Positions 1 through 5,139 of a stretch of DNA of 5,139 nucleotides are shown one piece after another. The position numbers and the translations under genes are program-made. The stretch lies in the NCBI GenBank assembly GCA_000388065.2, contig KB932207.1. One strand, 5' to 3'. Numbering within the stretch: position 1 is the first letter of the stretch; each line of letters begins with the position of its first letter. This DNA is from Fonticula alba ATCC 38817. Its lineage: Eukaryota; Protista; Nucleariida. Below the pieces are notes generated by a model. That model saw only the letters and a list, made by a program, of their open reading frames with translations, did no database searches and was not told the DNA's origin.

Positions 1-70
1 GGGGGGGGGGGGGGGGGAAAGTGCGCTCGTGCTGTCACTCTGCTCAGGGGGACGGGGTGTGCCACCGGGT

Positions 71-726
71 CTAGGTGGACTTGGCCGCACGCGAGACAGC
101 GTGGATCTCCTCAATGAACACACCCAGGTGCTCGGGCGAGTGGTTCGGCAGCATGCCATGGCCAAGGTTGGCGATGAGGCTGCCATCACCATTGCTATGG
201 GGGTGGGGAGGAATGATGTTAGAGAGGGGAGCGGGTCCGAGGGGGAGGGAGGGAGGGCGGGAGGGGGACACGGAGGGCAAGAAGTCACGTACTCGGCCAG
301 CATACGGCGGACCTCCTGGCGAATGACCTCCGGAGGGGCGAACAGAGTGCACGGGTCGAGATTGCCCTGAAGGACGCAGCCCGGGCCGGCCTTGGCACGA
401 GCCGACTTCAGGTCGATGGTCCAGTCGATGCCGAGGACATCATAGCCGAGCTTGGCCACCAGGTCCAGCGAGTGCATGGCACCGCGAGCGAAGACCACCA
501 GAGGGACGGCCTCAACACCATCAGCCGCCAGGCGGGCCTTCACGCCCTCGGCAATACGCGCGAGGTAGGGAAGAGAGAACTCCTTCAGCTGATGCGGCGG
601 CAGCTCGCCAGCGTTCGAGTCGAACACCTGGAGGATCTGTGTGTATATGTGTGTGTGTGAGAGAGAGAGAGAGAGAGGGAGGGAGAGAGAATGCAAAAGG
701 GCGCAACCACAAGGAGACAAGCTGAA

Positions 727-789
<63 letters not shown>

Positions 790-1927
790 GTGATGAGGGG
801 GTGGGATGTGTGTACCTGCGCGCCGGCATGGACCTTGCCCACCAGATACTCGATGGACACCTCGGTGATGACGTGCAGCAGCTGGTGGGCAGCCTCCGGG
901 TGGTTCAGGACAAAGGCCTTGGCTGCGAGACAGGAGGGAGGGTGGCAAAATGGGTGAGAGACGAGCATACAACCGGAGGCAGCAAAATGCACATGACACA
1001 TACCATGGTCCCAGTTCCGGCTGCCGCCGCCCTGAACCATGTACGCCATGATGGTCCATGGGGCACCGCAGAAGCCGAAGAGCGGGCAGTGCCCATTCAT
1101 GCGCATGCGCGTCAGGGCCACCGCCTCCCAGACGTACGACAGCGACTGGGCACACTTGGTGTAGTCCTCGCCGACGAACTTGACAATGGTCTCCACATCA
1201 GCCGGAGTGGCCACTCGGTTGGGGATCTGCGGGCCGATCCCCGGCGTCATGACCACATCCACACCCAGAGCCTGGGGAATGACCAGGATGTCGGAGAAGA
1301 TGATGGCCGCGTCCAGGGCGAAGCGGCGCAGCGGCTGCAGAGTCACTTCGGACGCCAGGGAGGGCGACCGGCAGACTTCGAAGAACTGGGACAGGCTGCG
1401 AACCGAGCGGAACTCTGTTTGCATGTAGGCATGTGTACGTGTGTGTGAGCGTGTGAGTGAGTGAGTGAGTGGGTGGGTGGGTGGGTGGGTGGGTGGGTGG
1501 GTAGGTGTACGTCTGCATGCGTCTGCATGCGTCTGCATGCGTCTGCATGCGTCTGCGTGCGTCTGCGTGCGTTTGTGTCCACACAGAAAGCGAAGCTAGG
1601 GCGTGAAGAGATGCGAGACGCATTGAGGAGGGGCAGATCAGCGCGCTAGCCATCCGAGAGGAATCCCATGGACAACGCACCGGGCAGATAGCGACCAGCC
1701 TGGCGCATAGCCCACACCGGGGTATGTGACACCGGCAGGCCCTTGGCCGCGCGCAGGGCGGTGTCGTTCTTCAGCGGGGGGAAGGCAGCCAGGAGACCGG
1801 ATCCGCCAGGAGCGCGGGCAGCCTGGATCCGGGCCACAGCCTCATCCTCGGGCATCTCGTCGAGCAGGGCCCCGGGCTGGGGGATGAAGGTGGGGGTGGG
1901 AGCGGGAGTGGGGGTGGGGACAGACAT
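71..1927 (-). CDS. hemE: Uroporphyrinogen III decarboxylase (heme biosynthesis). Spliced model: exons 1927-1681, 1414-1004, 922-816, 636-293, 194-71; 1233 nt = 410 aa + stop
   Basis: Spliced translation gives the UROD signature blocks in order: [24 protein letters not shown]|[30 protein letters not shown]|[29 protein letters not shown]. All four introns are GT..AG with compatible phases (1,1,0,2) and the total length is divisible by 3. TAG stop at 73-71. The substrate-binding Arg, Asp, Tyr, Ser and His residues known from human UROD are present. The start could lie further upstream (see findings). Confidence 0.96.
195..292 (-). other. hemE intron 4 (98 nt, phase 2)
   Basis: Donor GA|GTACGT, CTAAC branch-like motif, acceptor CCCATAG|C AAT. 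Joins the exon 4 frame to the NLGHG frame. Confidence 0.88.
638..690 (+). repeat. Compound (GT)n/(GA)n tract at the 3' end of hemE intron 3
   Basis: On the sense strand it reads (CT)n(CA)n directly before the acceptor AG. Confidence 0.9.
727..789 (+). repeat. (ATG)21 microsatellite in hemE intron 3; 17 copies visible again at 5089-5139
   Basis: Direct count. It explains the poly-M, poly-I and poly-S ORF shadows. Confidence 0.98.
923..1003 (-). other. hemE intron 2 (81 nt, phase 1, in frame and stop-free)
   Basis: Donor CAT G|GTATGT and acceptor CTCGCAG|CC AAG. Removal deletes a non-UROD-like 27-aa insert. Confidence 0.88.
1455..1502 (+). repeat. Compound (GAGT)4(GGGT)8 microsatellite in hemE intron 1, matching the G-quadruplex pattern
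   Basis: Direct count. Eight GGG runs with 1-nt loops lie on the template strand of hemE. Confidence 0.95.
1511..1580 (+). repeat. 10-bp minisatellite in hemE intron 1: (GTCTGCATGC)4 (GTCTGCGTGC)2 plus one degenerate unit
   Basis: Direct reading of 1511-1580. Confidence 0.96.
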
Positions 1928-2113
1928 GCTGGGGAAAAGAGGGGGGAGGGGGACAAAGGGCAGCCAGTGTAACAGCCGGCCGGGGCGATGGGCCCTCTCA
2001 GGCCGGCGGCCCTTGGAGCCCAGACGAAAGTGCCCATATGGAGGGCAACACGACCCACGTTTCCGATCCAATGTCCTGGCGCCCCCCTGGTCCGAGAACC
2101 AGGGACAACGCAC

Positions 2114-2238
2114 ATCGTAGTCTCGGTCGGGCACAGAGACATCCCCTGGAAGCCCCGTCTCTTGGGGCGGATGCCCGAGGATCGCACAAACAAGCGGGGC
2201 TGGGCAGCCGGAGCCAGGCGCCCACGCACGCAGCCCAT
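2114..2238 (-). CDS. Putative additional upstream hemE exon ([10 protein letters not shown]...PTETT-I), or a 5'-UTR exon
   Basis: A strong acceptor (CCCCTCTTTTCCCCAG) lies 1 nt before the hemE ATG at 1927 and a GTGCGT donor lies at 2113. Splicing 1929-2113 joins an ATG at 2238 in frame. No transcript evidence. Confidence 0.45.
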
Positions 2239-2357
2239 AGCTGCCAATTTACTATCGGCGTCCGATGCACGTGATGGCGGCCATGAGGGGCGCGCGGATC
2301 CATTTCCCGGCGGACCTCCTCCTCCCAGCCGGTCCCCCCGGAGCCTTGCAGCACACA
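2239..2357. promoter_or_regulatory. Putative compact bidirectional promoter between hemE and CBP3
   Basis: It is the only space between two divergent genes. Contains CACGTG (2268-2273) and adjacent inverted repeats. Depends on the scaffold join being correct. Confidence 0.5.
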
Positions 2358-2367
2358 NNNNNNNNNN
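2358..2367. other. Scaffold gap (10 N)
   Basis: Ten consecutive N. A round number like this is typical of a placeholder gap of uncertain size. Confidence 0.99.
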
Positions 2368-3861
2368 TGTTCCTGGCGTCGAGGTGCACCACTCCTGCCG
2401 GGGTCCTGCGCTGCACGCGTGCGCGCAACCGGCAGCTGGCCCCCGCGCTCGCAGGTGCCCAGCCTGCGGCCTCCTTTTCTTCAAAGCGCCCCGCCCCGGC
2501 CGACATGCCCATCCAGCCGACCCCGCCACCGCTGTTTGTTCCGCGGACGTCGATGTTCCGGCCGCTGGCTCGGCTGAACGCCCAGACGGAGGAGATGTTC
2601 CGGCAGAATGCCGCCCAGCAGGCCCCCCCCATCCCCGATCATCCGGCGCTGATTCCGGGCGAGCGGACGCACGATGACGACCCCTACCTGCCGGGGCATT
2701 CGCGCTATGTGGACATTGTGACGCCGCTGCCGAAAAATGCGCCGATTCTGCTCAAGGCCGCCCGCATCGGGCTGACCCTGGTGGGCCTCCAGTCGCGCGG
2801 GCCAATTGCCATGCGCCGCGCGCGCGAGCTCTTTGCCCGTGTGATGGAGGTGGCCGATGCCCGGCACAGCATGTTCGTGGAGCGTGCGTATCCGCCGGCC
2901 GCCATCACCAGCATCATCCCCGTCCTCATCATCTCCTCTCGCACTCCCCTGCCCTCCTCCCTCGCCCCCCCCCCTTCCTCTTTCCCTTCTGCTTGCCTGG
3001 CCCCCTTCTGTCGCTTCGTTCTCTCCCTCTGCCTACCGTCCCGCCTGCTTGCCTTTCGCCCGGCACTCACCTTTGGTTACTCCTCGCCCCCTCCCCCGCT
3101 CCCTCCCTCCCTCCCTCGCCCCCTCTCGCTCAGGCGCGGGTATGACGGACTCCTTCCAGACCTGGTTCCTGGTCTCCTACCTGCACGTGTGGATGTGCTC
3201 GATGCGGCTGCGCGTCGAGGGCCAGCCCGGCGACGATGTCAGCAAGCAGCTGGTGGAGCTTTTCATCGAGGAAGTCGAGCTGCGCATCCATCAGACCGGT
3301 GCCGTGCCCCGGCTGGATGCCACCATGAAGGTCTTTGTGGCCCAGATGCTTGGTGTGGACATTGCCCTGAATGAGGGAATCGTCGGTTGCGACTCGCTCC
3401 TGGCGTCTACCATGTGGCGGTGCGTGCACATGTGCATTTCACTCTCCGGCCATCGCTCGCGAAGCGTCTCCCTCACACCTGCCGCCCGTCCCCCTCCCTT
3501 TTTCCTGTACTGCCACACGCCTCTCCCTGCTTGGGCGCGCCTCGGGTGCAGTAATTTCACCGGAATGCGTGGTCGGCCGACCCAGCTCGAGTGGCTGGTC
3601 CGGTATGTCCGTTCGCATGTGGCCCACCTGGATGCCCTGTCCCAGTATGAGATTTACGCTGGCCACTTTACCTGGCCCCGGGCCAACGGCGATAATGTGC
3701 CGATCACCATCAATCGCGAGGCGGCCAACAAGGCCCCCTCGCCGGAGCTGCTGGCCGCGCGCATTGATCTCTTCCTGCTGGACGAGTATGTCCGCATGCA
3801 CTCCGATGGCCTGCCCTCGAGCCTGCCGCCCGGCAGCATTGATCTCGACCGGAAGTACTGA
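2367..3861 (+). CDS. CBP3: Ubiquinol-cytochrome c reductase assembly chaperone Cbp3/UQCC1. Spliced model: exons 2367(nTG)-2883, 3134-3419, 3552-3861; about 370 aa
   Basis: Spliced translation contains the family pattern recognised from memory: GMTDSFQTWFLVSYLHVWMCSMRLR ... QLVELF.E.VELRI ... LNEG...DSLLASTMWR|NF ... LEWLVRYVRSHVAHLDAL ... FTW. Introns GTGCGT..CAG are phase-compatible (1,2). TGA stop at 3859-3861. The N-terminus (M)FLASRCTTPAGVLRCTRARNRQLA.. is Arg/Ala-rich and acid-free, like a mitochondrial presequence. The first base of the start codon falls in the N gap; the first fully visible in-frame ATG is at 2505. Confidence 0.88.
2884..3133 (+). other. CBP3 intron 1 (250 nt, phase 1)
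   Basis: Donor GAG C|GTGCGT, long C/T tract, acceptor CTCAG|GC GCG GGT ATG. Confidence 0.88.
3420..3551 (+). other. CBP3 intron 2 (132 nt, phase 2, in frame and stop-free)
   Basis: Donor TGG CG|GTGCGT and acceptor TGCAG|T AAT restore the conserved WRN motif. Confidence 0.88.
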
Positions 3862-4362
3862 GCGATGCGAGTGTGAGCGCGAGCGCCCGGAGCTTTTGAG
3901 GTGCATTGCCCGGTGGTTCGCGCCTCCCTCCGCCCTCCCCCCTGATGTTCTTTTTCCCCTTTCCCTTGGGTTTGGCTCTCGCCTGTCCTCATAGACGCCA
4001 GTTGCTGCTGGCCCTGGCGGGAACGCGGCCGCTCTCTTTTCAACGCCCCGGGCCTGTTCCCCCCTCTCGCTCTCTCGCCTTCCGCGGTCCTCCGGACACA
4101 CATACATACATACGCACGCACCCCCCTCTCCCCCCCCCCCCTCTGAACCCCCGCCACCTCATCCCCCCCTATACCGGCACACATCCCCCAACCAACCTCC
4201 CGATAGACACCCAAAATCAATTGCAACATCTCTATTTCTTGCGAATGCCGGTGAAAGGTGGAAAGGAGGAGGAGCGAAGCAGAGGGCAGACCAGGGCGAG
4301 CCCATTAAAGGCAGGCACAGCGCGAGGCCGGGCTGGTGAAGATGGTATTGAGCCGGGGAAGA

Positions 4363-4379
4363 GGGGGGGGGGGGGGGGG
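4363..4379 (+). repeat. G17 homopolymer in the hemE 3' flank (also 1-17)
   Basis: Direct count. It marks the start of the terminal repeat. Confidence 0.97.
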
Positions 4380-4432
4380 AAAGTGCGCTCGTGCTGTCAC
4401 TCTGCTCAGGGGGACGGGGTGTGCCACCGGGT

Positions 4433-4998
4433 CTAGGTGGACTTGGCCGCACGCGAGACAGCGTGGATCTCCTCAATGAACACACCCAGGTGCTCGGGCG
4501 AGTGGTTCGGCAGCATGCCATGGCCAAGGTTGGCGATGAGGCTGCCATCACCATTGCTATGGGGGTGGGGAGGAATGATGTTAGAGAGGGGAGCGGGTCC
4601 GAGGGGGAGGGAGGGAGGGCGGGAGGGGGACACGGAGGGCAAGAAGTCACGTACTCGGCCAGCATACGGCGGACCTCCTGGCGAATGACCTCCGGAGGGG
4701 CGAACAGAGTGCACGGGTCGAGATTGCCCTGAAGGACGCAGCCCGGGCCGGCCTTGGCACGAGCCGACTTCAGGTCGATGGTCCAGTCGATGCCGAGGAC
4801 ATCATAGCCGAGCTTGGCCACCAGGTCCAGCGAGTGCATGGCACCGCGAGCGAAGACCACCAGAGGGACGGCCTCAACACCATCAGCCGCCAGGCGGGCC
4901 TTCACGCCCTCGGCAATACGCGCGAGGTAGGGAAGAGAGAACTCCTTCAGCTGATGCGGCGGCAGCTCGCCAGCGTTCGAGTCGAACACCTGGAGGAT
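4433..4998 (-). CDS. hemE: Second, partial copy of hemE (exons 4 and 5: 4998-4655 and 4556-4433), cut off within intron 3 by the window end
   Basis: Same sequence as 71-636 with offset 4362, including intron 4 and part of intron 3. This is probably the same locus seen twice rather than a paralog. Confidence 0.9.
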
Positions 4999-5088
4999 CT
5001 GTGTGTATATGTGTGTGTGTGAGAGAGAGAGAGAGAGAGGGAGGGAGAGAGAATGCAAAAGGGCGCAACCACAAGGAGACAAGCTGAA

Positions 5089-5139
<51 letters not shown>

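Follow-up and report, generated by a model that had tools for sequence, protein, structure and literature searches.

An apparent 4.35-kb hemE-CBP3 loop in the Fonticula alba draft assembly is probably a scaffolding artifact of two swapped, unmerged contigs

Gene-sized circles, such as the plastid minicircles of dinoflagellates and extrachromosomal circular DNA (eccDNA), are free molecules that often share a noncoding core and occur as a whole population of circles. Two assembly effects can look similar on paper. A collapsed recent tandem duplication links the contigs into a cycle at 100% identity and leaves flanking gaps that have the size of the hidden parts, and the misordering of short-read contigs with an unmerged overlap leaves identical contig ends near gaps, a join across a minimum-size gap, and breaks in homopolymers or microsatellites. 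Here, we analyze a stretch of 5,139 nucleotides from Fonticula alba ATCC 38817 (contig KB932207.1 of assembly GCA_000388065.2; the whole stretch is termed the window herein), which carries the genes hemE and CBP3 and begins and ends with the same 777 bases. The original prediction was that the scaffold closes on itself into a unit of ~4.35 kb, which would be a gene-sized circle or minichromosome, a recent tandem amplification, or an assembly false join. Our results point to the last of these, in that the apparent loop is probably a scaffolding artifact in which two contigs from a single-copy locus overlap but were not merged and were joined in the wrong order. The likeness of the CBP3-hemE unit to gene-sized circles and eccDNA is confined to the formal topology of a small one- or two-gene unit; the unit differs from them in having chromosomal flanks, in having no recognizable core or origin, and in a closure that hangs on a gap of 10 undetermined bases (10 N).

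A search of the organism's own genome (a 31.3-Mb assembly of 214 records) placed the window at positions 957468 to 962606 of a scaffold of 2,157,034 bp (C7:957468-962606; positions on this scaffold carry the prefix C7 herein). The claim that the scaffold closes on itself was therefore not borne out, because the window lies within a 2.16-Mb scaffold and has unrelated genes on either side. Its edges are contig ends, with a run of 1660 N directly upstream and a run of 1365 N directly downstream, and the sequence past both of these gaps is single copy. The upstream neighbor, a DEAH-type helicase gene on the plus strand, is represented by its 3' end, with HA2_N, HA2_C, and an OB_NTP_bind match that extends to the last position of its profile and is followed by a stop codon. 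The downstream neighbor, a WDR36/Utp21-like WD40 gene likewise on the plus strand, is represented by its 5' end. In blastn comparisons, the sequences past the two gaps had no similarity to the window, and no second copy of either half of the CBP3-hemE unit was found elsewhere in the 31.3-Mb assembly.

These flanks bear directly on the idea of an extrachromosomal circle or minichromosome of 4.35 kb that carries hemE and CBP3, alone or beside a chromosomal copy. Two adjacencies, the 777-bp overlap and the 10-N join, do formally close a cycle. However, the idea took the window for the whole scaffold, and this premise of a self-closing scaffold is false, since the scaffold ties the block to a unique chromosomal gene on each side (the helicase and WDR36/Utp21 genes) and the gap sizes fit a linear insertion. 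Scans of the window for tRNAs, Rfam families, and telomere repeats were empty, and no replication or maintenance element was recognized in it, in agreement with the earlier reading of the sequence; the window holds gene, intron, and short intergenic DNA only. Moreover, one of the two closing junctions is a gap of the smallest size that we observed (see below). We consider such a molecule extremely unlikely.

The window consists of two contigs, which we call A and B, with 10 N between them (positions 2358 to 2367). Contig A (positions 1 to 2357) has the 1660-N gap on its left and the 10-N gap on its right and contains a run of 17 G residues (G17), the entire hemE gene, and 430 bp of hemE upstream sequence. 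Contig B (positions 2368 to 5139) contains the upstream region of CBP3, CBP3 itself, a 571-bp 3' intergenic region, a G17 run, and the hemE sequence from exon 5 through exon 4 into part of intron 3, and it ends in an (ATG)n tract at the 1365-N gap. As originally reported, the start of A (positions 1 to 777) equals the end of B (positions 4363 to 5139); all 777 bases are identical, with 0 mismatches. The identity begins at the G17 run (positions 1 to 17 and 4363 to 4379), and the copies do not differ anywhere, even across this run and three microsatellites. The identity ends within the (ATG)21 microsatellite of hemE intron 3 (positions 727 to 789), which the first copy reads through and which stops at 17 units in the second copy (positions 5089 to 5139), where it is cut by the gap. 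The second copy is present for 777 bp only, and what would be its duplication junction is the 10-N gap. We read it as an unmerged overlap between B and A.

The only adjacency with sequence backing is B followed by A, via the 777-bp overlap. In this order, CBP3 (plus strand) and hemE (minus strand) lie tail to tail in a linear locus of 4352 bp, and the overlap ties together contig ends that the scaffold, written as A, 10 N, B, keeps apart. The two genes had been described as lying both tail to tail and head to head. The first arrangement is real, because the common 3' intergenic region (positions 3862 to 4432) is contiguous within contig B, whereas the second, together with the closure of the loop, depends entirely on the 10-N join, because only the B-A adjacency has sequence. 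In the usual false-duplication artifact, the overlapping ends face each other over a gap; here, the contigs would also be swapped, which puts the overlap on the outside and gives the appearance of a circle.

The 10-N gap is noncoding and sits between the start codons of hemE (position 1927) and CBP3 (position 2505), so that it does not affect the reading frame of either gene. The sequences on the two sides of positions 2358 to 2367 have neither a suffix-prefix overlap nor a 16-mer in common, and exact-pattern scans of Joint Genome Institute (JGI) metagenome contigs with both gap-flanking sequences gave no match. To judge the size of the gap, we surveyed 220 kb of the same scaffold, which contain 41 gaps, or about one per 5.4 kb. 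Exactly 10 N were found in 9 of the 41, no gap was smaller, and the remainder ranged from 16 to 3741 N, indicating that 10 N is a floor that stands for small or negative estimates. Nearly all contig ends in the 220 kb fall in G/C runs or microsatellites. The low-complexity ends and the N junction pointed out in the original prediction (G17, (ATG)n, and the 10-N join) were all seen, but because nearly all contig ends are alike, G17 and (ATG)n are the usual contig stops and not special to the CBP3-hemE unit. Since the gap has the floor size, no overlap bridges it, and another 10-N join in this scaffold is out of order (see below), continuity across positions 2358 to 2367 cannot be assumed.

The flanking gaps allow a comparison with the sequence expected in the B-A order. 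The upstream gap of 1660 N compares with the 1995 bp of B located before the overlap (ratio, 0.83), and the downstream gap of 1365 N compares with the 1580 bp of A located after it (ratio, 0.86). According to these ratios, A and B are each at about the right distance from their outer neighbors, and the inner A-B join alone is inconsistent. The same numbers also bear on the possibility that the scaffold is correct as written and reads hemE-CBP3-hemE, with a single CBP3 and the rest of a second hemE inside the 1365-N gap. No contig would have to be moved, and the second hemE would need 1150 bp (coding) or 1580 bp (all of A), compared with the 1365 N that are available. However, the match between 1660 N and 1995 bp of B would become a coincidence, one gene would have to be duplicated nontandemly across its neighbor at 100% identity, and the doubts about trusting the 10-N join apply here too, making this arrangement very unlikely.

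A control locus was found on the same scaffold, 60 kb from the window. The 220 kb hold just three repeats of at least 80 bp at at least 95% identity, and following one of them led to a DYRK-like kinase gene that is spread over three contigs (W, X, and Y), all on the plus strand. The exon with the GRGSFGQV (GxGxxG) motif (C7:889876-890019) lies on contig W, the VAIK-HCDL-DFG exon (C7:899615-900052; Pkinase profile 15 to 150) lies on contig Y, and the exon that runs from YIQSRFYRSPE to the C terminus (C7:895514-896014; Pkinase profile 159 to 263) lies on contig X. In the scaffold, the order is W, 10 N, V1, 10 N, V2, 1870 N, X, 10 N, Y, 3390 N, Z. The C-terminal half of the kinase is thereby found ~4 kb upstream of the N-terminal half, on the same strand and across a 10-N join, and two extra contigs (1625 and 1798 bp) separate the first exon from the rest of the gene. 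Because each half occurs just once in the whole assembly, the gene is complete only as W, Y, X, which proves that X and Y were swapped, with a floor gap as their join.

The contig ends at the kinase locus agree with the gene order. W ends with the 42 bases with which Y starts, and X ends with exactly the 95 bases with which Z starts (C7:899366-899460 and C7:903509-903603), although the distance from one 95-base copy to the other in the scaffold is 4143 bases and a 648-bp contig and 3390 N separate them. Overlaps between contigs that the scaffold keeps apart mark true neighbors at this locus. The gap after Y (3390 N) compares with the 3928 bases of X without its overlap with Z (ratio, 0.86). 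The 95-base identity looks like the K-1 overlap of graph neighbors that were parted in the scaffold, and we suspect that it stems from a de Bruijn graph assembler with K = 96; a literature search for the assembler behind the F. alba assembly found none. The window shares the signature of the kinase locus, namely, a swap, a floor gap, and compensating outer gaps, and this proven out-of-order gene in the same scaffold likewise fits the misordering of short-read contigs.

An assembly false join, flagged as a serious possibility from the outset, is thus the best-supported explanation, because the loop closes only via the 10-N join, the gap sizes fit a swap, and the kinase swap is proven 60 kb away. 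We infer that the copy number of the locus is one and that the real chromosomal order would be the helicase gene, CBP3 (plus strand), hemE (minus strand), and the WDR36/Utp21 gene. The assembler would have built B, with CBP3 and the 3' end of hemE, and A, with the entire hemE gene, and would never have merged their 777-base overlap, presumably because the overlap starts and stops in contig-breaking tracts (G17 and (ATG)n). The scaffolder, as we picture its way of working, would have set A at the right distance from its left neighbor and B at the right distance from its right neighbor and would have chained A to B, recording a strongly negative gap estimate as the minimum of 10 N. Such chaining would produce the apparent loop.

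Several points weigh against this explanation. The 777-bp repeat is the only redundancy of >100 bp between contigs in the 220 kb, so that unmerged overlaps are not pervasive in this assembly. Chaining A before B normally needs some read pairs, which a real tandem duplication would supply, and the kinase control proves misordering but not that all 10-N joins are wrong. The false join is therefore favored, but not decisively, over its main rival, in which the 4.35-kb CBP3-hemE unit was duplicated in tandem on the chromosome very recently and exists in two or more copies. The assembler would then have collapsed the copies to ~1.2 units, the gaps would hide the rest, and the 10-N gap would be the novel junction. 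Both adjacencies would be real, B-A by sequence and A-B by scaffolding, which would explain why A was chained before B, and the lack of any other long redundancy in the 220 kb also speaks for this reading. A real duplication also predicts the same gap sizes, as 1660 and 1365 N fit a hidden 1995 and 1580 bp equally well as under the artifact, and the flank-to-flank distance in the scaffold (8164 bp) is near two units (8704 bp).

The duplication has its own difficulties. The kinase locus has the same swap, 10-N join, and compensating gap, and a duplication there would need further errors. Zero differences between the copies, even in the G17 run and three microsatellites, are what is expected from the reuse of the same reads. 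With collapsed recent tandem duplications, the locus shares the cyclic adjacency of contigs, the 100% identity, and the flanking gaps sized as the hidden parts, but it differs from them in that the assembly holds no diverged second copy and that the junction is an N gap, which moreover has the floor size. We therefore regard a tandem duplication as rather unlikely. The same holds, in slightly wider terms, for a cycle that is real in any form, either as a very recent tandem amplification of the hemE-CBP3 cassette or, far less likely, also as a 4.35-kb circle excised from it, with the 10 N hiding the junction; we find this doubtful.

The apparent circle is most likely to be mainly a warning about this assembly and not a minichromosome. 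In the public F. alba draft, a gap occurs about every 5 kb, and at least some of the 10-N joins link contigs in the wrong order. Wrong joins of this type can yield "circles" and duplications that are false, as well as scrambled genes, and models of genes close to them are likely broken; the public gene model of the kinase at C7:889876-900052 is probably an example. Both hemE and CBP3 are ordinary housekeeping genes, and a tandem duplication, if true, would be a minor strain-level structural variant.

Some further features of the scaffold were recorded. In three cases, the two window-flanking gaps and the gap at C7:900119-903508, the length of the N run is 0.83 to 0.86 of the hidden sequence that can be deduced, which suggests that the N runs of this assembly are systematically ~15% too short. 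At C7:785857, 824628, and 917420, one contig ends in a long C run and the next begins with a long G run, or the reverse, which is odd for true neighbors; these gaps may mark further wrong joins or inverted contigs. An exact repeat of 87 bases (93 bases at 98% identity), which opens with G17, occurs at C7:829174-829260 and C7:837937-838023, with the copies 8.8 kb apart and near gaps. The matched exons of the TMEM120, EXS, and SIR2 genes were collinear at the coarse resolution of whole-genome family scans.

The original prediction also stated that the window carries two intact, intron-containing genes, and profile searches, which were run exon by exon and not on joined spliced proteins, support both. 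The hemE gene lies on the minus strand and has five exons: exon 1 at positions 1681 to 1927 (start codon at 1927 to 1925, splice donor GTGCGT; URO-D profile 2 to 31), exon 2 at 1004 to 1414 (profile 34 to 161), exon 3 at 816 to 922 (profile 166 to 200), exon 4 at 293 to 636 (profile 202 to 310; repeated at 4655 to 4998), and exon 5 at 71 to 194 (stop codon at 71 to 73; profile 317 to 345; repeated at 4433 to 4556). All hemE introns have GT-AG borders. The five exons are collinear and span positions 2 to 345 of the 346 positions of the URO-D profile (PF01208), a full-length family match. Taken alone, three of them score above the URO-D cutoff (exon 3 barely), and the two weakest score at about the cutoff.

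The CBP3/UQCC1 gene lies on the plus strand and has three exons: exon 1 at positions 2505 to 2883, which is 100% identical to H696_04414, exon 2 at 3134 to 3419 (Ubiq_cyt_C_chap profile 4 to 97), and exon 3 at 3552 to 3861 (stop codon at 3859 to 3861; profile 107 to 140). Exon 2 reaches 58.9 bits, compared with a cutoff of 21.5 (PF03981), and exon 3 carries the profile on to its last position (140/140). The model equals the public F. alba protein H696_04414 of 324 amino acids, which carries PF03981. Both HemE/UROD (PF01208) and CBP3/UQCC1 (PF03981) thus resemble their families in complete, collinear profile coverage over the spliced exons, and neither gene is unusual here.

The CBP3 frame is open for 45 codons upstream of the annotated start codon (positions 2370 to 2504) and reaches the 10-N gap. 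The translation of this segment is rich in R, A, S, and T, resembling a mitochondrial presequence, and the true start codon of CBP3 may lie in or past the gap, on whatever truly precedes contig B. In a word search with exon 1 and the open upstream frame, the sole match was H696_04414, starting at position 2505. We rejected the open frame across the 10-N gap as evidence of continuity, because the number of N is arbitrary and, at 64% G+C, frames that stay open for 30 to 45 codons are common. A WDR36/Utp21 first exon hidden in the hemE upstream sequence (positions 1928 to 2357) was also considered, and none was apparent there. Three of the hemE introns, intron 3 (positions 637 to 815), intron 2 (positions 923 to 1003), and intron 1 (positions 1415 to 1680), are packed with microsatellites, including (GA)16, (ATG)21, (GTGG)13, and six copies of the 10-mer CGTCTGCATG; low complexity of this type causes the fragmentation of this assembly.

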